Shown here: positions 14,443 to 27,740 of the stretch, piece by piece | Numbering within the stretch: the stretch's first letter is position 1 | Layout: each line of letters opens with the position of its first letter | DNA from: Rebecca billardiae RCC1528 | Lineage: Eukaryota > Protista > Haptophyta | Assembly (NCBI GenBank): GCA_965240325.2 | Contig: OZ251231.1 | Location: 1,736,001-1,800,000 of the forward strand | Length of the DNA stretch: 64,000 nt | Direction of reading: 5' to 3' | Program-made: the position numbers and the translations under genes | Notes under the pieces: generated by a model | What the model was told of the DNA's origin: nothing | Database searches by the model: none | What the model saw: the letters and a program-made list of their open reading frames with translations, nothing else

Positions 14443-17400
14443 TTACCCCGCACGCGGCGTGTATGGACTCCTGTAGCTGACGCCGTCGCTCGTCACATCC
14501 TCGCCGCTCGGCCCCGGCGGAGGGCGCCGTGGCGATGGCGGATTCTTGCGCGGCGGCGGCGGCGGCGGCGGGCCAGGATCAGGCATGTTTGCCCGTCTGG
14601 GCGCGACGCGCGCTGGAATGATCGCCGGTGCGGGGAAGGGCGAGGCAGGCCGCGCTATTTGCGGCTGGTCGTCCGATGGCTTGGCCCCCGCCGCCCCCGC
14701 TTCTCTCCGCGCCTGCGGGGGCGTCTGCGCCCGCGAGCGCGCCGGTGACTGCGGCGCCGAGCTGCGCACGATCGGCGGCTCGTCGAGCGAGCTCGCTGCG
14801 TGATGCGCCTGCTCGACCAGCTCCATGGGCTGCGGAGGTGGCGGAGGCTTCTTGGCATCACGCGCCGTTCGCTCGTCGGCTGTGCTCGATTGCTCGCCGT
14901 ACTGCCCGGGCGGATCGAGGTCCGCGCGCGAGCCGCGCTGCTCGTGGAGCTGCCGGATCGCCCGGAGCGTGCGCAGCCAGCGCCGCACGAAGAAGGCGCA
15001 CACGCCCAGCAGCGCGCAGTGCCAGAGGATGATGAAGGTGGCGATCACGGCCTGCTGCGTGGTCGACAGCGCGGCCACGCCTCCGGAGAGCGAGGCCGCG
15101 GACGCCGTGCCCTCCACGCCGCCTAGGTCGTCGCCCTCGCAGCTGCTCGCGTCAGTCGCGTCGCCGCCGCACACGCCGCACTCGTCGATACTCTCCCCGG
15201 ACTCGGCGACGCCGTCGCAGCCGTTGCAGCTGCCGCCGTCGCCCTCGCACACGCCGCACGCGTCGAACTCGCCGAGGCAGTCGAACTCGCAGCTGCCGTC
15301 GTCGTACGTCACGGCCGAGCCGTAGTTGAGCGCAGCGGTGTCGGGGCAGCCGAGCACCGCGAGGAGAGGCGCCAGCTCGACCGTCGCGTTGAGCCGCTCC
15401 GAGAGCTCCGGCAGCGAGACGTTGGCCACCGCCTCCAGCACCAGCCGAGGCGCGAGCGAGTCCGAGACCAGCACGTCGGTGACGACCACGACGCTCGCCG
15501 CCGCGACCGCGTGGATGCTCAGCCGCTGCTGCGGGAGCCGGAGGATTGCGGCGAGGCCCTCCAGGTAGCGCGCGCGCGCGCCGCTGTCAAAGTCGTCGAT
15601 CGAGCCGCCCAGCTGCAGCTGCAGCATCACGACGGCGCCGCTGGAGGGCGGGAGCGCGGGCGGGAAGGAGGGCGGCGGCGGCAGGCGCGGCGGGCTCGGC
15701 GGCGGCTCGGATGGCGGGCTGGGTGGCGGCGGGCTGGGCGGCGGCGCTGGCGGCGGGGGCGGCGAGTAGTACGCGCAATTGCCGTCGTCGACCGACGCGG
15801 CCGGCTCGTAGTTGCGAGCGGTCGAGTCGGTGCAGCCGCCGTACGTGCAGCTGCCGTCATCCGTGGTCGCGTCGCTCACAAAGTTGAGCGCGCTCGCGTC
15901 CGTGCAGCCGGCGAGGTCGGGCTCGCAGCTGCCGTCGTCGAAGGTGGCGCTCGGCTCAAAGTTGAGCGCGGCGCTGTCCGTGCAGCCCGCATATGAGCAC
16001 GCGCCCGAGTCCGCGGTCGCGCCCGACTGGAAGTTGAACGCGGCCGAGTCGGTGCAGCCGGCCACGCCAAACGTGCACCGCTCGGCGACGCTGCCGCCGG
16101 TCGCGAGACTGTCGTAGTTGAGGGCGCTCGGCGCGGTGCAGCCCAGCCGCGGGAAGAGGCAGCCGCCGTCGTCCGACGTGGCGAGCGAGTCGAAGTTGCT
16201 CGCGCTCGAGTTGGTGCAGCCCGCGCTCGCGTCGACGCAGCTCCCGTCGTCATCGGTCGCGCTCGAGTCGAAGTTGAGCGCGCCGCTCTGGACGCAGCCG
16301 CCGTAGACGCAGCTGCCGTCGTCGAGCTGCGCGGCCGAGTCGTAGTTGTCGGCGCCAGTGCGCGCGCAGCCCTGCACGGGCGCGACGCACGAGCCGTCGT
16401 CCTGCGTCGCGGCCGAGTCGTAGTTGGCTGCGCCCGAGTCCGCGCAGCCGAGCAGCACGCACGAGCCATCGTCCGACGTCGCCGCGCTCAGGAAGTTCAC
16501 GGCGCCGCTGTCGGCGCAGCCGAGCACGGGCGCGGCGCAGCCGCCGTCGTTGAACGTGGCGGTGGAGTCGAAGTTGGTGGCCAGGCTGTCGGTGCACCCG
16601 GCGTACTCGCAGCTGGCTGTGCCCTCGGTGCCGTTCGCCGTGGGATCAAAGTTGTCCGCCGTCGAGTCGGCGCACCCATCCTCCTGCAGCGCGCGGGCGC
16701 GCGCGCGCGAGCCGCCGCCGCCGCCGCCCAGCCGCCGCCGCGCGCCGCCGCTCTGAGCGTACTCGCACGCGCCTCGCACGTGCACCGTCGCCCGCGAGTC
16801 GAAGTTGAGCGCTGTGGGCGACATGCACCCGCCGATCTGCGCGACGCAGCTGCCGTCGTCCAGCGTCGCGAACGACTCGTAGTTGGCCGCACTCGAGTTG
16901 GTGCAGCCGGGCACGGGGAAGTGGCAGCTGCCGTCGTCGCGCGTCGCGCTCGAGGCGTAGTTGGCCGCCGCGGGCGAGATGCAGCCGAGCACGCGCGGCA
17001 CGCAGCTGCCGTCGTCCACGGCGGCCGCGGCCCGGTAGTTGAGCGCGGCGGAGTCGGTGCAGCCCGCGATGGCGAACACGCAGCTCCCGTCCGAGAGCGT
17101 GGCGCTCGAGTCGTAGTTGCTCGCGCGCGACAGCGTGCAGCCCGGCGCGGGCAGCACGCAGCTGCCGTCGTCCGCGTTCGCGGTGGCGCGGAAGTTGAGC
17201 GCGGCCGAGGCGGTGCAGCCCGGGCGGCGGAAGGCGCACGAGCCGTCGTCCTCCGTCGCGCGCGAGTCGAAGTTGATCGCGAGAGCCGACACGCACCCGG
17301 GCCGCGCGCCGTACAGGCAGCTCCCGTCGTCCACCGTGTACGCCGGCTTGTAGTTGAGCGCGCTGAGGTTGGTGCAGCCGGGGAGGGCGTACACGCAGCC

Positions 17401-20400
17401 GCCGCCGAGCGGGACCGTGGCACGCGCGTCGAAGTTGAGCGCGCTCGGGTCGGTGCAGCCCAGCCGCGCGAAGCGGCACGCGCCCGAGTCGACCGTCGCG
17501 GCCGGGCGGTAGTTGAGCGCGCTCGAGTTGGTGCAGCCGACGAGAGGGTACGTGCACGGGCCGAGCACCTCCGCCACCGAGTTGAAATTGCTTGCCGCGG
17601 GGTCCCTGCAGCCGACGACGCGCGGCGGCGAGGGCGGCGGCGGCCGAGGCGGCGGCGAGGGCGGCGGCGGTGGCAGCGGGGGCTGCGAGGGCGGGGGCTT
17701 CGGCGACGGCGGTGGGAAGGGTGCCGTGCGCGGTGGCGGTGGCGGCGTCGGCGGTGGGCTGGGCGGAAGGCTTGGCGGCGGTGAAGGTGGCGGGCTCGGA
17801 GGTGGGCTCGGCGGAGGCGAGGGCGGCGGCGGCGAGGGTGGAGGGCTGGGCGGCGGGCTCGGCGGTGGTGATGGCGGCGGCGGGCTCGGCGGCGGGCGAG
17901 GTGGCGGGCTCGGCGGCGGGCTGGGCGGCGGCGGGCTGGGCGGCGGACTTGGCGGGGGCGACGGGGGCGGCGTGGGCGGCGGCGGCGGACTCGGCGGCGG
18001 GCTCGGCGGTGGCGACGGTGGCGGTGGACTCGGTGGCGGATTGGGCGGTGGGGATGGTGGCGGGAGTGGTGGCGGCGGCGGGCTCGGCGGCGGGCTTGGT
18101 GGTGGCCTTGGCGGCGCAGAAGGCGGCGGCGGGCTTGGCGGCGGCGACGGTGGCGGGCTCGGTGGCGGCGAGGGGGGTGGCGGCGAGGGGGGCGGGCTTG
18201 GCGGCGGGCTCGGCGGTGGGCTTGGCGGCGGCGGGCTCGGTGGCGGGCTCGGCGGCGGGCTCGGCGGCGGGCTGGGTGGTGGGCGTGGCGGAGGACTGGG
18301 CGGCGGGCTTGGTGGCGGCGGGCTCGGTGGCGGACTTGGCGGCGGCGAGGGTGGCGGCGTGGGCGGTGGCGGTAGTGGCGGCGGGCTCGGTGGCGGGCTC
18401 GGTGGCGGCGAGGGTGGCGGCGGGCTTGGCGGTGGGAACGGTGGCGGGCTCGGCGGAGGACTGGGCGGCGGCGAGGGTGGCGGCGGGCTCGGTGGCGGAC
18501 TTGGCGGCGGCGAGGGTGGCGGCGCGGGCGGCGGCGGCGGTGGCGGCGGGCTTGGCGGTGGGCTCGGCGGCGGTGAGGGCGGCGGCGGGCTCGGCGGCGG
18601 GCTTGGCGGCGGGCTTGGCGGTGGGCTAGGCGGTGGCGGGCTCGGGGGCGGGCTCGGTGGAGGGCTCGGAGGTGGCGACGGTGGCGCGCCTGGCGGCGGC
18701 GACGGTGGCGGCAATGGCGGTGGCGGGCTCGGCGGCGGGCTCGGCGGCGGGCTCGGCGGCGGACTTGGTGGTGGCGGGCTTGGCGGCGGGCTCGGCGGCG
18801 GGCTTGGCGGCGGGCTGGGCGGTGGCGGACTCGGCGGCGGATTCGGCGGGGGCGATGGTGGCGGGGTGGGCGGCGGCGGCAGCGGCGGCGGGCTCGGCGG
18901 CGGGCTCGGCGGTGGTGACGGGGGCGGCGGGCTTGGCGGCGGGCTCGGTGGTGGGCGAGGTGGCGAGCTCGGCGGAGGCGGGCTGGGTGGGGGGCTGGGC
19001 GGAGGGCTGGGTGGCGGGCTGGGCGGCGGCGACGGCGGCGGCGATGGAGGCGGTGGTGATGGTGGTGGTGTCGGCGGAGGTGATGGCGGCGGTGCTGGCG
19101 GTGGTCCGGGTGGTGGGCTGGGCGGCGGCGGGCTGGGCGGCGGGCTGGGCGGCGGGCTTGGTGGCGGGCTGGGCGGGCTCGGTGGCGGGCTAGGCGGCGG
19201 GCTGGGCGGCGGGGGGCTGGGCGGCGGACTGGGCGGCGGGGTGGGTGGTGGGCTGGGCGGCGGCGGGCTGGGCGGCGGCGATGGCGGCGGCGATGGCGGC
19301 GGCGACGGCGGCGGCGGGCTGGGCGGCGGGCTGGGCGGCGGGCTCGGTGGCGGGCTGGGCGGCGGCGGGCTGGGCGGCGGACTGGGCGGCGGACTGGGTG
19401 GTGGGCTTGGCGGCGGCGGGCTGGGCGGCGGCGATGGCGGTGGCAACGGCGGCGGCGAGGGCGGCGGCGGGCTCGGTGGCGGGCTGGGCGGCGGGCTCGG
19501 TGGCGGGCTGGGCGGCGGCGGGCTCGGCGGCGGGCTTGGCGGCGGGCTGGGTGGTGGGCTGGGCGGCGGCGGGCTGGGCGGCGGCGATGGCGGTGGCGAC
19601 GGCGGCGGCGACGGAGGCGGCGGGCTGGGCGGCGGGCTGGGCGGCGGGCTGGGCGGCGGGCTGGGCGGCGGTGGACTGGGCGGCGGGCTGGGCGGCGGGC
19701 TGGGTGGTGGGCTTGGCGGCGGCGGGCTGGGCGGCGGGCTGGGTGGTGGCGACGGCGGCGGCGATGGCGGCGGCGGGCTGGGTGGCGGGCTGGGCGGCGG
19801 GCTGGGCGGCGGGCTGGGCGGCGGTGGACTGGGCGGCGGGCTTGGCGGCGGGCCGGGTGGTGGGCTTGGCGGCGGCGGGCTGGGCGGCGGAGATGGCGGT
19901 GGCGACGGCGGCGGCGATGGCGGCGGCGGGCTGGGTGGCGGGCTGGGCGGCGGGCTGGGCGGCGGGCTGGGCGGCGGTGGACTGGGCGGCGGGCTGGGCG
20001 GCGGGCTGGGTGGTGGGCTTGGCGGCGGCGGGCTGGGCGGCGGCGATGGCGGCGGGCTGGGCGGCGGCGATGGCGGCGGCGGGCTGGGTGGCGGGCTGGG
20101 CGGCGGCGATGGCGGTGGCGACGGCGGCGGCGATGGCGGTGGCGGGCTCGGTGGCGGGCTGGGCGGCGGGCTGGGCGGCGGGCCCGGTGGCGGCGGGCTT
20201 GGCGGCGGGCTGGGCGGCGGGCTGGGCGGCGGTGGGCTTGGCGGCGGGCTGGGCGGCGGAGACGGTGGCGGCGAGGGCGGCGAAGGCGGAGGTGACGGTG
20301 GCGGCGTGGGTGGTGGCGAGGGTGGCGGGCTCGGTGGCGGCGGGCTCGGCGGTGGGCTCGGTGGCGGGGAGGGCGGAGGCGAGGGTGGTGGCGGGAGGGG

Positions 20401-23400
20401 TGGCGGGCTTGGCGGCGGCGAGGGCGGCAGCGAGGGCGGTGGCGGAGACGGCGGTGGGCTCGGCGGCGGCGCGGGCGGCGGTGACGGCGGCGGCTGTGGT
20501 GGCGGCGATGGGGGTGGGCTCGGCGGCGGCGGCGATGGCGGCGGGCTCGGTGGTGGCGATGGTGGCGGCGATGGCGGCGGCGGCGATGGCGGTGGGCTGG
20601 GCGGCGGCGAGGGTGGCGGCGAGGGCGGTGGCGGTGATGGCGGTGGGCTCGGAGGCGGGCTCGGAGGCGGGCTCGGAGGCGGGCTCGGTGGCGGGCGCGG
20701 TGGCGGGCTTGGAGGTGGCGAGGGCGGCGGACTCGGCGGGCTCGGAGGCGGGAACGGCTCGGCGCGCGGCGGCGGCGGTGGAGTGGGCGGCGGGCTCGGC
20801 GGAGGCGAGGGCGGCGGGCGTGGCGGCGGCGAGGGTGGCGGCGAGGGTGGCGGCGGGCTCGGTGGCGGATGTGGCGGTGGGCTCGGCGGCGGGCTCGGCG
20901 GCGGGCTCGGCGGCGGGCTCGGCGGCGGGCTGGGCGGCGGGCTGGGCGGCGGGCTCGGCGGTGGTGGGCTCGGCGGCGGGCTGGGTGGCGGGCTGGGCGG
21001 CGGGCTGGGCGGCGGGCTCGGTGGTGGCGGGCTGGGCGGCGGGCTGGGTGGAGGGCTGGGCGGCGGGCTCGGTGGTGGCGGGCTGGGCGGCGGGCTGGGC
21101 GGCGGGCTGGGCGGCGGGCTCGGAGGTGGCGGGCTGGGCGGCGGGCTCGGTGGCGGGCTGGGCGGCGGGCTCGGCGGCGGCGTGGGCGGCGGCGGGCTGG
21201 GCGGTGGGCTGGGCGGCGGCGCCGGTGGCGGGCTGGGCGGCGGGCTGGGCGGCGGGCTGGGCGGCGGCGGGCTGGGTGGCGGGCTGGGCGGCGGGGCGGG
21301 CGGTGCGCTCGGCGGCGGTGGGCTCGGCGGCGGGCTGGGCGGCGGGTTGGGCGGCGGCGGGCTTGGCGGCGGGCTTGGCGGCGGACTTGGCGGCGGGCTC
21401 GGTGGTGGCGGGCTGGGCGGCGGGCTGGGCGGAGGGCTTGGCGGCGGGCTCGGCGGTGGCGGCGAGGGCGGCGGGCCGGGCGGCGGCGCGGGCGGCGGGC
21501 TGGGCGGCGGCACGGGCGGCGGCGGGCTCCGCGACTCGCCCTGCAGGTCCACACCGGCCACGTTGTCCGCGTACACCTGCGCCACCGCGTCCGCACTCAG
21601 CGTCCCTGACCACACCCCGACTTCGTCAATCTCGCCGATCAGCCGCGCAAACCCAAACGTGGCGGAGCCGCCTCCGACGCGCACGCCCTGCCCGCCCGGC
21701 TGCGTCGTGTCGAGCGCGAGGGTCGCCGTGGCCTGCAGCGCGCCGCCGACGTACACGCGCATCCTCCCCGTCGCCTCCGCGTACGCCACGCACGCGTGCC
21801 CCCAGCTGCCGAGCGCTACCTTGGCGCCGTCGGGCGCGCACGTCACGAACGCACCGCCGCCTCCAAAGAAGCAAGGCGCGCGCTCGAACAGCACGAGCTC
21901 GAAGAGGCCGCCGGCCTGCTCGGCGCCCCACGAGAGCAGCGCCGCGTTCGCGAGCGTGGTCTGCCGGAACCACACGCACGCCGAGCGCGAGCGCGCGCCG
22001 AGCAGCTCCGCGGGCATGGCCGCCTCGTCCTCCGCGCGCGTCTCCAGTCCCGCGGGCAGCTGCAGCGCGCTGCCCACGACACCTCCGGGCTCGTAGGTGG
22101 CGTTGTGCGGCACGAGCGTGCTGAGCACGAGGGAGGTGCCGTTCACGCTGTCCGTGAGCGCGCGGTCGAAGCCCCAGTGCCGGTAGAGCACCGCGGGCGG
22201 CGCGGGCGGCAGCGGCGGCGGCGGCGCGGGCGGCGGGCTGGGCGGCGGGCTGGGCGGCGACGGCTGCGGCGGCGGGCTGGGCGGCGGCCGTGGCGGCGGG
22301 CTCGGCGGCGACGCTGGAGGCGGCGGGCTCGGCGGCGGCTGCGGCGGCGGGCTCGGCGGCGGGCGCGGTGGCGGCGGCGGGCTCGGCGGCGGGCTCGGCG
22401 GCGGCGGCGCCGGGAACTCGCCCGAGCAGTCAGCGGTCGCGTTTGCAATCTGCGCAATCTCGGCGGCCGAGATAGCGCGCGCAAAGAGACACACGTCGTC
22501 CACGCGGCCTCGGAAGCGGCCGAGCGAGCTGCTCGCCGGGTCGTACCCGAGCCAGAGCTGGCCGCTCGTCGTCGCCAGCGCGATGGTCTGCTGCGCCGTG
22601 CGCACGCCGTCCTGCCACACCTCGACGGCGCTCCCGTCGTACAGAGCGACCGCGTGCTGCCACGTGTCGATCGCGTACGCGCCCGCGCCCACCACGTCCG
22701 GCCCGCTGTCAATGTCGCCGGCGACGAAGTAGAGGACGTTGCTGAAGGTGTACAGCTGGAAGCCGGTGAGCGAGGACGAGCCGCCGTGCACGAGCAGCGG
22801 CTTCGTCGGCGCCGAAGTGCCCGTGCGCAGGAACCACAGGCTGACCGCGCGCGCGCCGCTTCCGAGAAAGTTCCCGCCCGGGTCCGCCGAATACAGGGAG
22901 CCGTCGACGCCGTTCAGCACCGCCGCGCGGCCGAGCACGGAGGTGTGCAGCGAGAAGGTGACAGTGCCCACCTGCGCGAGGTCGAGCGAGCCCTTCGAGT
23001 CCGTGAGCACCCCGTTCAGCTTCCAGTGGTGCTCCGAGCTCGTTGGCGGGCTCGGCGGCGGCCGCGGCAGGTTGGGCGGCGACGGCGGCGGCGGCGCGGG
23101 CGACGGCAGCGTGTTCTCAGCCGCGTCGATGCCGAGGCTCGCGCACAGGATGCGCGTGCCGATCTGCGCGGCGGAGAGCGCGACGTCGTCCACTGCGATG
23201 TCGTCGATCCCGCCGCTGTCCAGCGTCCCCAGCCCGAACGCGCCCGTGCCCGTGTACTCGCCGAAGACGAGCTCGGAGCCGCTCGCGCCCACCTGCAGCG
23301 CGACCGTGCGCTCATGGTCCAGCGCGCCGTCCACGTAGCTGCGGAACGTCGCGCCGTCGTACGCGAAGGCGACGTGCGCCCACGTGTCGCGCGCGAGCGG

Positions 23401-24813
23401 CAGCCCGTTCGAGTCCGAGCCGCCCGCGCGCGGGTAGCTGAGCAGCAGCTTGTTCGAGTTGGAGGTGTACGCGATGTACAGCTCGGTGGCGTAGCTCGCG
23501 ATGTCCACGACAAACTCGCTCTGCGCCGCGGCCACCCGGAGCCAGAAGGACAGCGTCCAGGTGAAGTGCGAGGCGTTGGTCGGCAGCGCGGCGCGCGGGT
23601 AGGCGAGCCGCGTCTTCGGCTCGCCCTGCGTCCACACGCCGTACCCGCCCAGCTTGCCCGGCGCGGCGAACGCCAGCGACGTCTCCTCCGTCGCGTTGGC
23701 CGCGCCCACGCCGTCGAGCGCGTCGCCGTTCAGCGGGTAGTGGTGGAGCAGCGAGGGCTCTGCGCGCACGGCGGCGGGCGGAGCGCAGCGGCGCGCGGGG
23801 CGGCGGCGCGGTGGCTCAGCGCGCGGCGTGCGCGGCCGTGCGTACGCGCGCTCAGCCACGGCGCGTGGCCGGCCACGTGCGCGCGCAACTGAGACGTGCT
23901 GGGCGCTCGCGCCGGGTGCGCGCCGCGGCTGTCCGGCGCACCTCGGCACGAAGGCGGCGGTGGCGGCGGTGGCGGCGTGGGCAGCGGGTTGCCCGCCGCA
24001 TCCAGCCCCACGCTCGCGTTCGCGATCCGCCCCGCGAGCTCCCCCGCCGAGAGCGCGACGTCGTCCACTGCGATGTCGTCGATCCCGCCATGGTCGAGCG
24101 TCCCCATGCCAAACGCGCCCGTGCCCGTGTACTCGCCGAAGACGAGCTCGGAGCCGCCCGCGCCCACCTGCAGCGCGACCGTGCGCTCGTGGTCCAGCGC
24201 GCCGTCCACGTAGCTGCGGAACGTCGCGCCGTCGTACGCGAAGGCGACGTGCGCCCACGTGTCGCGCGCGAGCGGCAGCCCGTTCGAGTCCGAGCCGCCC
24301 GCGCGCGGGTAGCTGAGCAGCAGCTTGTTCGAGTTGGAGGTGTACGCGATGTACAGCTCGGTGGCGTAGCTCGCGATGTCCACGACAAACTCGCTCTGCG
24401 CCGCGGCCACCCGGAGCCAGAAGGTCAGCGTCCAGGTGAAGTGCGAGGCGTTGGTCGGCAGCGCGGCGCGCGGGTAGGCCAGCCGCGTCTTGGGCGTCGA
24501 CTGTGTCCACAGCCCGTACCCGCCGATCAGTCCACCCGGGGCGGTGAGATTGAGCGCAGTCTCATCGGTCGCGTTGGCGTTGCCAATGCTGTCGTCCGTG
24601 TCGCCGTTCAGCGTGAAGTGGTGGATGAGCGAGCTCGCCTCTGCGCGCGCGTCGCGGCCGCGCAAGCCGCACGCCGGTGAGCAGGCGGATGCGCGCGCAC
24701 GGCGTGGCGCGGCGCGACGCGGCGCGCGCACGTTCGGTCACAGTGAACGCCGTGGCCAGGAGGAGCGCTGCGATGTGGGCAACTCGCCGCGTGCGCAGCC
24801 GGCCGGTGGCCAT
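14443..24813 (-). CDS. Giant type-I membrane surface protein (~3365 aa): signal peptide, 4 LamG/ConA-like domains, SPPP stalk, 23+1 GCT(D/N)..A.N(Y/F)...DDGSC repeats, SEA-like domain, TM; exons 24813-24732, 24640-23942, 23759-14443
   Basis: Signal MATGRLRTRRVAHIAALLLATAFTVTE; two phase-1 GT-AG introns link the three ORFs; LamG motifs (TWAHVAFAYDGATFRSYVDG, FRGRVDDVCLFARAISAAEI); Cys repeats; DACGVCEGDG motif; TM AVIATFIILWHCALLGVCAFFV. Confidence 0.85.
15775..17613 (-). repeat. 23 tandem ~26-aa GCT(D/N)xxAxN(Y/F)xxxAxxDDGSC repeats
   Basis: Counted in the translation: 11 before and 12 after an RRRL-Gly-rich linker. Confidence 0.9.
17625..21530 (-). repeat. Coding Ser-Pro3/4 (extensin-like) tandem repeat
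   Basis: (SPPP)n/(SPPPP)n over about 1300 codons; appears as GGC/GGT-rich repeats on +. Confidence 0.95.
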
Positions 24814-25050
24814 TGCTGCAGCGCTGCACACATCCGGCGTTTGAGCCGCGCCGGCGCAGATATTGGGCGCAAGCCAGTTTCGTCGGGCGGCGCAACCGCA
24901 CAGTCCGGGAGCACCGCGCCCGCCTGATTGCGGTCCGGGTACGCCGGACGCATCTGCTGCCTCCGGCCCGCACTGCAGCTTGCGTCGGGGCAGGCCGGGG
25001 AGCCCAGCTCGGCCCGACGAGAGGTGTCGCCGAAGTGCAATCGTGGCACC

Positions 25051-26165
25051 ATGCTGGCAGCGTTCGCGTCGCTGAGCGTGCTCGCTGCGACGGCGTCGAG
25101 CGCGTGCGATGTGACTGAGCTGGCAAAGTGCGCGCGCACGCACCAGAAGCCGTACCTCGCGCCCGACTTCCCGCTGCGGGCCAGCGCGGACCAGAGCGGC
25201 GACTACTGCGAGTGGGCCTCGAAGCTCTACGGATGCATTAAGGATGCCGGCTGCATGGAGCCGCACCTGGAGAAGGAGTGCGCGCGCGCGTTCGAGCTGG
25301 CGGGGTGTGACGGCGCCGACGTGTGCAAGCAGGGCCACCGCGCCCTCGCCGACATTGAGAAGAGGAAGCCGGAGCCCGCCCCCGCGAACGCGCCGGCGTC
25401 CGCGCCGGCTCCGGTCGAGCCGGAGCCGACGCCGGCGCCAGCCGCTGACGCCGACGCCGCCGCCGCCGACGCCGAGGGCGAGGCGACCGATGCGGAGCCT
25501 GACGCGTTCGACTACGAGAAGTACCCGCCGCACGCCCCCTTCTTCGGCTTCATGGGCGCCGCTGGCGCGCTCGTCTTTGCCAACCTGGGCGCCGCGTACG
25601 GCACCGCAAAGAGCGGCCGCGGCATCTCGACGATGGGCGTGCTCTACCCCAACCTCGTGATGAAGCACATCATCCCCGTCGTGATGGCGGGCGTGCTTGG
25701 CATCTACGGCCTCATCATCGCCGTCATCATCGGCAACGGCGTCACCGGCTTCAAAAACAACGAACCTGTCTACACGGGTGAGTGCACACGCCATGCCGAC
25801 CGCGGCGCGCGCCTGCCTGGTTTGGCTGCGCGCACGCGCCGGCCGCGCGCCGCGCTGTGCCCCTTGCGCGGATGGTGCGCCACCCGTGCCAGCGCCCGTG
25901 GGCGTTCTCCGCGCTGACCCGCTCCGACGCGCCGCGCCCGGCCTCGTGCGCAGCGTTCAAGGGCTTCGCCCACCTCGGCGGCGGTCTCGCGTGCGGCCTG
26001 AGCGGGCTTGCGGCCGGCCTGGCGATCGGCATCGTCGGCGACTACGGCGTGCGCTCGGCGGCCGAGCAGCCAAAGCTGTACGTCGGCATGGTGCTCGTGC
26101 TCATCTTCTCGGAGGCGCTTGGGCTGTACGGACTCATCGTCGGATTGATCCTCACGAGCAAGTAG
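25051..26165 (+). CDS. ATP6V0C: V-type H+-ATPase proteolipid subunit c with N-terminal signal peptide and Cys-rich extension (~312 aa); exons 25051-25777 and 25954-26165
   Basis: [28 protein letters not shown]...[24 protein letters not shown]...[66 protein letters not shown], with the essential Glu kept. The phase-1 GTGAG..CGCAG intron joins the frames; Kozak-like GCACCATG at 25051. Confidence 0.92.
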
Positions 26166-26921
26166 GTGTTGTCTCGCCGGCGGCCGCGGGGAGTGGCCGA
26201 CTCGTCTGTGGAGCGTGACGGAGCGGATGCATGGGGGAGTGCGAGCACGGCGACCAAGACCGCTGCTGCTGATCGCGCGAGCCGCGGTCGGCGCACGGCG
26301 GTGCCGACGCGTGGGCCACCGCTGATGCCGACGGCACTTCGCCGGCAGCGGGCCGTCGACGTTGGGGAGGGCAGCGGCCTGCCCGGCCTGGTGTGCCGGG
26401 CAGCGCCGCGTGCGGACCTGTTGTCGACCCAGACGCGGATGTGATGTCGATCGACGACGGTGGGCGCGGCGCGCCACGACGAGCGCCTCCGCGCGGCATC
26501 TCGTGTTGGCAGTCGACCGTTCAGATGGTACATACATGGTACACACATGCTGTTAGATGTGGATCTGGGACGTGGTCGGGTTGACGCCCGGCGGCGTGTT
26601 ATCGCCGCAGTCTCCTGAGCCCGTACCCTGAGCGGAACGTCGCGGGATAGAGTTGCTACTAGTAGTAAGTGCAATCATCATGGCGGGCCTGTCATTCATC
26701 ACGTCCACCTTCAACCTGCGCTGTGCCGTGGGAATCCAGTCGAACGGTGCCGCTTGATGAAGCTCGCGGCACGTGTGCGAAACCCAAATTGTCACCGGAT
26801 CCGCCGGACCACCACAGAAAACCAGAAACGGCCGGCGCCGGCAAAAAGCCCAGGCGTCATGGCCTTTCGCGTCGCCCGCATGGCGGCGACTGCCTGATAG
26901 GCTTGACAGGTGCAAGTGTAA

Positions 26922-27740
26922 ATGGACATGGACAGTCGCCCGCCCTCGCGGGAGGTCCAAGGCTATCTCGAGCGCCTAACGATCGCAAACGAGGCCAAGT
27001 CTATCCCATGCTATTCTGGCCGCTCGTACGGGATCGCCGAAGCCTCGCAGTACGCACAGCGACCCCGCGATGTGCGCAGCCTCTCCATCCACGTGCCTGG
27101 AGAGCGCCAGCTCTACGGCCTGCAGTATGGCGCCATGCTCGCCGAGGCAGCGCACCAAGCCACCGTGGACGGCACGCCCGAGGCGCTCAAGTGGCCGACG
27201 CCGCGCGGCACGCGAGCCCGCGACCTGGAGGGCTACACAGGGCATGTGCCGCGCATGGCCGGTGCTATTGGCCTCACGACCGCCGAGCGCGTCCGTGCCT
27301 CCGACCGGCTGCTGGCCGAGCACTACCAGTCGCACCCAGAAGAGCGCCCTCGCGAAGAGCCCGCCTCGCAACCACATGCCGGCTTTCCCGTGCGCGTGCC
27401 GCCTGCGCGCGGGCTGGCAGCAGACCGTGAGGCGATGGTGCGCGCTCAGCGCGCGCGCGCCGAGTCAGAGGCAGCTCGTCAGCGGCTTGCGACGCCGGTT
27501 GTCGTCAGCCGCCCACCGAGTTCGGTGGAGCGCAAGGCGCCAAACGGGCAGCCGGGCGGCAGCTGGGCAGCTGCGACCGCTTCGGCTCCACAGATCCTGG
27601 CGCACACTTCCACTCGTCTTCACTTTGACAGCGACTCTCACGGCCTGGCTGGACCGCGCGTCGTTGAGCGCACTGTGCTGGTGTCCTCCCGCGGGTTATT
27701 CTTGCCGACGTCGACGTCGGGGGCGGCCGCGATGAAATGA
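26922..27740 (+). CDS. Hypothetical protein with GYTGHVP motif, FAM166/ciliary microtubule-inner-protein-like
   Basis: Coding-like codon usage; SIPCYSG and EGYTGHVPRMAGAIGLT resemble the (P)GY(T/S)G(H/Y)(V/I)P motif. 5' end uncertain. Confidence 0.55.
   Translation: MDMDSRPPSREVQGYLERLTIANEAKSIPCYSGRSYGIAEASQYAQRPRDVRSLSIHVPGERQLYGLQYGAMLAEAAHQATVDGTPEALKWPTPRGTRARDLEGYTGHVPRMAGAIGLTTAERVRASDRLLAEHYQSHPEERPREEPASQPHAGFPVRVPPARGLAADREAMVRAQRARAESEAARQRLATPVVVSRPPSSVERKAPNGQPGGSWAAATASAPQILAHTSTRLHFDSDSHGLAGPRVVERTVLVSSRGLFLPTSTSGAAAMK

Follow-up and report, generated by a model that had tools for sequence, protein, structure and literature searches.

Subunit c of the V-ATPase is among the most conserved and most minimal of eukaryotic membrane proteins, and V-ATPase diversification is usually credited to isoforms of subunit a and to separate accessory proteins. 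The 64,000-nucleotide stretch of DNA analyzed here (the window; G+C content, 73.6%) contains a gene that raises the question of whether subunit c itself can carry an additional domain and, if so, what that domain would do on a rotor. The initial annotation had counted about 158 in-frame codons before the sequence YPPHAPFFG, at which the proteolipid proper begins, and had divided them into a signal-like start, a domain with 8 Cys residues and an acidic Pro/Ala linker. This description was borne out: 157 codons precede Y158, and the three segments correspond to residues 1 to 18, 19 to 93 and 94 to 152. An intron at 25778 to 25953 had gone unmentioned. The gene consists of two exons, 25051 to 25777 and 25954 to 26165 on the plus strand, and the spliced coding sequence of 939 nt, including the stop codon, specifies 312 amino acids (the fusion protein). 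The ATG at 25051 lies in the context caccATGc, the frame is free of stops up to the GT donor at 25778 (GTGAGT), and the AG acceptor at 25952 to 25953 restores the frame (tac acg g/cg ttc aag), which ends with a TAG. The features of the gene are as follows:

25051 to 25777, plus strand: exon 1 (727 nt), with the start codon, the signal-like peptide, the 8-Cys domain, the linker, TM1-TM2 and the start of the lumenal loop; overlain by a contig from a relative (run X1, record 1).
25051 to 25104, plus strand: signal-like peptide, residues 1 to 18; assigned from hydropathy and from small residues at -3/-1 before C19, with a putative cleavage site.
25105 to 25329, plus strand: 8-Cys domain, residues 19 to 93; 8 Cys invariant in alignment A3; predicted small helical bundle.
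25330 to 25506, plus strand: acidic Pro/Ala-rich linker, residues 94 to 152; net charge of about -9; length and sequence differ among orthologs.
25507 to 25536, plus strand: juxtamembrane motif, residues 153 to 162, where the linker meets the core; the same in P0002 and P0005 as in the window.
25778 to 25953, plus strand: intron of 176 nt, GT..AG, phase 1, in the TM2-TM3 lumenal loop.
25954 to 26165, plus strand: exon 2, with TM3-TM4 of the c core, the Glu codon at 26112 to 26114 and the stop codon TAG at 26163 to 26165.

The extension has the composition of coding DNA. G+C contents by codon position are 0.65/0.51/0.905 in the extension and 0.58/0.44/0.92 in the core, with the second position lowest in both; at the third position, values are 0.905 to 0.906 in the extension and 0.91 to 0.92 in the core. 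The other two frames of the extension contain 2 and 6 stops. Since the codon-position pattern is that of the core and the other frames are interrupted, the extension is not a chance open reading frame. The absence of any Met shortly before the core was also confirmed, the only in-frame Met residues after M1 being M69 of the Cys domain and M167 of TM1 in the stretch up to the core. GTGCG donor candidates inside the extension (25104, 25128 and 25278) were considered and found without support; joining 25104 to the AG at 25520 to 25521 gives an out-of-frame product, and the transcript of a relative is contiguous there. The extension is a genuine protein-coding part of the c-subunit gene, in a single reading frame. 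Run ERR14847151 contains a Logan contig (L001) with an identical copy of the locus. The sole database protein for this gene from the same organism, P0001 (288 amino acids; window positions 25051 to 25917; L001:602-1468), is a prokaryote-style model translated through the intron, with a separate second call for exon 2. Neither a second copy of the Cys domain nor one of the c core was found in the 64-kb window.

If extension and core form one protein, they should be found on one mRNA, and transcript data of a related organism allowed this to be examined. Logan contigs of run X1 (share, 0.07) were compared with the window over 24700 to 26700. Record 1, a 1,362-nt contig that is about 90% identical, matches 25034 to 25318, 25416 to 25775 and 25953 to 26166. 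The intron is absent from it (177 letters are skipped, with one letter between), and the contig therefore represents spliced RNA, which argues that run X1, only provisionally classed as RNA, is indeed of this type. The aligned or replaced blocks show length differences of +3, -18 and +12 nt relative to the window; all of these are multiples of three, and thus the reading frame is kept across the whole extension. The 18 nt are missing from a replacement stretch in the linker. Among the listed substitutions in the domain (23 of 31), none affects a Cys codon and about half of the affected codons are silent; this was counted manually, and the last Cys lies inside a replaced block and outside the count. 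Hence, extension and core are on one spliced mRNA in the relative. A transcript that bypasses the extension, which the initial annotation had named as evidence against the fusion, was not seen in this run, in which the relative's contig runs contiguously through the extension.

The same run answered the question, also raised in the initial annotation, of whether a second, canonical c paralog exists. Records 3 and 4 are two further c-type contigs that match the core alone, with about 81% DNA identity to the fused core. Record 3 matches 25524 to 25745 and 25980 to 26163, and record 4 matches 25542 to 25737. The loop in record 3 has the same length as that in the window, with 58 letters in place of 58 exonic ones, and its unmatched letters before 25524 contain ATG CCC GAG CTC GAT CCG CTT TG, a canonical short N-terminus. 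In the relative, c paralogs of the canonical, bare type are thus expressed in addition to the fused gene. Their presence beside the fused gene implies that the duplication that separated fused and canonical forms predates the split of the two organisms.

The part of the protein that follows the extension has the features of a V-type subunit c. PF00137 matches both hairpins, residues 168 to 227 with 46.9 bits and exon 2 residues 7 to 66 with 66.5 bits (cutoff, 24), and TIGR01100, the equivalog model of eukaryotic V-type c, gives 102.4 bits for exon 1 alone and 150.6 bits for the full-length ortholog P0005 (cutoff, 61.45). Hydropathy analysis revealed four hydrophobic segments 3' of the extension. 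The proton-carrying Glu, described earlier as intact, is indeed present as E296 (codon 26112 to 26114); the Glu of the ortholog aligns with that of solved c subunits, and we take its position to be that of E137 in TM4 of yeast Vma3. The core matches solved c subunits with E values of 2.7e-57 to 4e-45 and c'' with E values of 6e-19 to 1.6e-16, and by this sequence comparison it belongs with c rather than with c''. There are substitutions peculiar to the fused clade in the two cytoplasmic loops, which read AKSGRGIS and GDY/FGVRS in place of SGVG/SGTG and GDAGVR in solved c subunits, and IFSE is a further substitution in the core. Judged from its sequence, the core is still a canonical c under strong constraint. 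From the conservation of 91 to 97% among the cores of orthologs, we infer that the fusion protein probably joins the rotating V0 ring.

The extension starts with a signal-like peptide that reaches a Kyte-Doolittle maximum of 2.19 over 11 residues and ends in TASSA before C19. The N-termini of the orthologs P0002 and P0005 are hydrophobic and signal-like as well, with sequences that differ from that in the window. The Cys residues of the domain that follows are C19, C27, C53, C62, C68, C77, C86 and C92, which gives a spacing of C-x7-C-x25-C-x8-C-x5-C-x8-C-x8-C-x5-C without CC or CXC. AlphaFold2, run on an alignment of four sequences of the Cys domain and thus covering this domain alone, produced a model of moderate confidence (mean pLDDT, 73; pTM, 0.61) with four helices, at domain residues 6 to 15, 31 to 50, 56 to 69 and 74 to 77. 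In this model, C53 and C62 are on the second helix and C77 is on the third, with C68 and C86 just outside the third. The repeated i/i+9 Cys pairs would suit helices stapled by disulfides, if the residues pair in this way. HRAL, which had been singled out as a motif of the domain, did not survive the comparison: it is absent from all three orthologs.

A structure and fold search for the domain, which the initial annotation had proposed, yielded the small helical model described above and no fold match. The best Foldseek hit in the PDB had an E value of 3.0, and the best VIA-align hit had a Z score of 5.0, to unrelated helical proteins; these are generic resemblances to helical hairpins or TPR-like folds. 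No Pfam family was found for residues 1 to 158 at an E value of ≤1 and no PDB sequence match for the domain at an E value of ≤10. The ESM Atlas offered no neighbor by features, the matches in shape or features being generic (TM scores of 0.46 to 0.60 to TPR/PPR-like pieces), and a word search with the four-sequence domain alignment found no stand-alone relatives of 45 to 140 amino acids. Characteristic Cys patterns are CC and CXC in nonspecific lipid transfer proteins (nsLTP) and C-x2-C … C-x5-C in saposins. An identity of the domain as nsLTP/8CM, CFEM or saposin type was considered and rejected; the Cys patterns differ and there is no Pfam match. Foldseek did return nsLTP chains with E values of 3.5 to 4.8 and TM scores of about 0.23 to 0.27, but these weak nsLTP rows and those of RGM are not meaningful. 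The domain thus represents an orphan fold family, and the fusion is its only known setting to date. Bipartite plastid targeting was also rejected as an explanation of the extension, in which the signal peptide is followed by a conserved 8-Cys domain and not by a stretch resembling a transit peptide; moreover, the core is that of a vacuolar-type c. N-glycosylation sequons are absent. A dibasic KR at residues 104 and 105, directly after the domain, is found in the window copy alone, and the extensions of P0002, P0003 and P0005 are without any dibasic site.

If the extension has a function, it should be retained in related genes, and its absence from all orthologs had been named beforehand as a result that would speak against it. 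The extension is in fact kept. An exhaustive HMMER search with residues 1 to 105 against 1.84 billion cluster representatives gave three matches, P0002, P0003 and P0004, of which P0004 was dismissed as spurious, a repetitive protein with a match limited to 22 residues around CKQxHR. P0002 (243 amino acids) and P0003 (156 amino acids) are both from one JGI metagenome. P0002 has a signal peptide, the same 8 Cys, a shorter linker, the juxtamembrane motif and the c core; the called protein runs into an intron at the exact site of that in the window, after which the DNA (L002) has an exon 2 that is 97% identical to that of the window. P0003 comprises the domain and part of the linker only; its linker is interrupted by a GT donor, and the contig stops short of a core. 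P0005 was reached by a word search that started from the front part of P0002; it is a full-length spliced model of 286 amino acids with the same architecture, listed at NCBI as 'hypothetical protein T492DRAFT_1104693 [Pavlovales sp. CCMP2436]'. The search of haptophytes for the same fusion that had been suggested was therefore successful. The gene for P0005 has a single intron of 144 nt (L004) at the same site and in the same phase as that in the window, and the phase-1 intron site is common to the three complete genes (window, L002 and L004). The P0003 gene (L003:1092-1625), with 72% identity to P0002 across the front part, has the donor CCCGG/GTGCGT in the linker where L002 reads on; thus, domain and core are separated by an intron in at least one member of the family.

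All 8 Cys are invariant in the four sequences from the window, P0002, P0003 and P0005 (alignment A3). The identity between the window protein and P0005 is 91% in the core, 39% in the domain, 37% in the linker (few alignable columns, because lengths differ) and 29% in the signal peptide. This pattern fits a hard-constrained rotor core with a structurally constrained, faster-evolving lumenal domain and a spacer. On this comparison, the fusion is conserved in several Pavlovales-type genes; its distribution beyond these four was judged from HMMER searches with single sequences and from word searches. A word-index protein search with window residues 1 to 165 returned P0001 alone, and metagenome scans with domain patterns and with a degenerate DNA pattern for the juxtamembrane motif were empty. 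No synteny was detected by tblastx between the flanks of the window and L002, L003 or L004. The G+C content of the window and the source of P0005, its closest named ortholog, point to a haptophyte of the order Pavlovales, most likely Diacronema or a near relative, as the origin of the window.

The sequence itself is already public: at NCBI, it is an unnamed hypothetical protein, and the copy in the JGI metagenome is called 'ATP synthase proteolipid subunit.' No paper on a signal peptide or a lumenal domain in a V-type c subunit, and none on a Pavlovales V-ATPase, came up in full-text literature searches. Studies of coccolithophores regard subunit c as a small protein of the usual kind (von Dassow et al. 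2009, PMC2784329, citing Corstjens et al. 2001 for Pleurochrysis). The fusion gene would thus represent a lineage-restricted isoform of a universal rotor subunit that is joined to an orphan domain, as far as can be judged from the sequences compared.

How would such a protein fit into a V-ATPase? Both termini of subunit c face the lumen and TM1 lines the interior of the ring, as known from structures and topology of yeast and mammalian V0, while the cytoplasmic loops (AKSGxG; GDAGVR...QQPxLFVG) face the central rotor. Since the N-terminus is lumenal, a lumenal extension is topologically coherent, and since a long N-terminal domain on that side must be translocated, a signal peptide is needed; a signal-like start is present in every ortholog. 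We consider it reasonably probable that the gene encodes a Pavlovales c paralog whose lumen-facing N-terminus is extended by a cleavable signal peptide, a helical domain of about 75 residues with four disulfides and a flexible tether and that works as a minority member of the V0 ring. The signal peptide would bring the N-terminus into the lumen of the endoplasmic reticulum (ER) and would then be removed, the Cys domain would fold and oxidize in the lumen, and the four c helices would insert in the normal topology. The protein would enter the V0 ring alongside canonical c and c'', probably at a minority of positions; canonical paralogs are present, and a full set of nine or ten tethered domains would be expected to crowd the inner rim. 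Possible crowding, if the domain were on every ring position, and the loop substitutions of the fused clade are among the points that weigh on this explanation. The domain would hang on a flexible acidic Pro/Ala tether of 35 to 60 residues at the lumenal mouth of the ring and turn with the rotor. There, it could bind a lumenal partner, mark or sort one pump population, or be a built-in counterpart of the lumenal caps formed by Ac45/ATP6AP2/Voa1. For a compartment-specific isoform, the initial annotation had given scale-forming vesicles as an example; Pavlovales are not known to calcify or to form plate scales.

With canonical c subunits (yeast Vma3, human ATP6V0C and plant VHA-c), the fusion protein shares two PF00137 hairpins with four TM helices, the Glu in TM4 and largely also the motifs of the cytoplasmic loops, and its core has about 70% alignable identity to plant c. 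It differs from them by the SGRG, GDYGVR and IFSE substitutions and by its N-terminus: solved c subunits align from about residue 5 to 10, with tails of a few residues, compared with 157 residues in the fusion protein. A precedent for an N-terminally extended minority ring member is c'' (Vma16/ATP6V0B), a proteolipid paralog with extra N-terminal material; it occupies a single ring position, and c' and c'' fill a minority of positions in fungi. However, the extra piece of c'' is a fifth TM helix, whereas that of the fusion protein is a signal peptide plus a soluble lumenal domain. ATP6AP1/Ac45, ATP6AP2 and yeast Voa1 have the same order of signal peptide, lumenal domain and TM helix as the fusion protein, and published V0 structures have their lumenal domain under the c-ring and their TM helix associated with the ring. 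The fusion would place a lumenal domain at this position as well. In these accessory proteins the helix belongs to a separate protein, whereas in the fusion protein it is TM1 of c itself. The proposal that the domain is an Ac45-like factor was not upheld as far as relationship is concerned: there is no sequence similarity to Ac45/ATP6AP1 (Pfam was empty at an E value of ≤1 and there was no PDB sequence match), and the predicted structure of the domain is a small bundle of helices with disulfides, whereas the lumenal domain of Ac45 is beta-rich. Yeast proteolipids with engineered N-terminal or tandem fusions reportedly tolerate material on the lumenal termini of c in a working ring; these are laboratory constructs, whereas the fusion gene is natural and conserved.

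Different fates of the extension are conceivable, and they are not equally probable. It is highly improbable that the extension is an artefact of the gene model, i.e., an upstream open reading frame, a 5' leader or part of a neighboring gene, with the real c starting downstream or on another 5' exon. Such an error might be suspected given that canonical c subunits are bare and that P0001, the organism's only database model, is itself wrong in reading through the intron. But the frame is free of stops and offers no usable Met ahead of the core, the third codon positions of the extension are of the coding type, the spliced contig of the relative is contiguous and in frame, and the same complete fusion is present in two independent orthologous genes, one of them annotated at full length. 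Improbable, though to a lesser degree, is a co-option of the c-like core, which would tie the lumenal domain to the membrane through its four helices and have no part in the V-ATPase rotor. The substitutions in both cytoplasmic loops would agree with a release from the rotor, and canonical paralogs are available for housekeeping. On the other hand, the core is 91 to 97% identical between distant orthologs and has its Glu intact, and its TIGR01100 score is far above the equivalog cutoff; so strong a constraint is more readily explained by ring packing and proton transport than by anchoring alone.

A processing of the fusion protein deserves more attention, although we regard it as rather unlikely. 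After entry into the ER, the protein could be cut in the linker or at the juxtamembrane motif to give a free lumenal or secreted Cys-rich protein and an ordinary c of about 16 kDa; the c core would then be a carrier and membrane anchor, or the extension would be an isoform-specific pro-piece. The KR directly after the domain in the window copy could be a site for this cut, the linker is long, variable and disordered in appearance, and crowding would speak against many intact copies per ring. A precedent comes from F-type ATP synthases: isoforms of subunit c that differ only in their N-terminal pieces are known, for example in Trypanosoma brucei (PMC3542316). However, the extensions of P0002, P0003 and P0005 contain neither the KR nor any other dibasic site. 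The one conserved candidate for a processing motif is the juxtamembrane motif, which is equally explicable as structural. Returning to the minority ring member, we hold only tentatively, and with somewhat more doubt than confidence, that the domain stays on the mature pump, in which case one or a few ring positions would carry a tethered four-disulfide lumenal domain as a natural appendage of the rotor. If this is true, the rotor ring itself can bear a lumenal function, and the tethered domain could replace an Ac45/Voa1-type role or set a compartment-specific pump via the proteolipid rather than via subunit a. The protein would also be a ready-made model for the lumenal mass that is tolerated by a rotating ring, and it could reveal how algae without recognizable Ac45/Voa1-type proteins cap or sort their pumps.

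The genes on either side of the fusion gene were also inspected. Downstream is an open reading frame on the plus strand, 26922 to 27740 (272 amino acids), that is also called on L001; it has no Pfam family, and it has no counterpart beside the orthologs. Upstream, a giant gene on the minus strand, 14443 to 24813, is divergent from the fusion gene, with a likely start at about 24813, some 240 bp from the ATG at 25051. Its open reading frame of 3,355 amino acids has repeated Laminin_G_3 (concanavalin-like) modules, the first of which was confirmed as PF13385, and an extensin-like (S/x)PPP repeat of about 1,700 residues. The translation further shows numerous 'GCT-S-A-NF/Y' modules with Cys, as well as a TM helix and a tail rich in Pro. 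Between 23730 to 24731 and the N-terminal part of the open reading frame 14443 to 24510 (minus strand), there are adjacent, near-identical stretches of about 190 amino acids with Laminin_G_3 (…NASHFTWTL-FWLRVAAAQSEFVVDIASYATELYIAYTSNSNKLLL…) in different frames. This arrangement suggests that an exon or module was recently duplicated in tandem or that the two stretches are joined by an intron.
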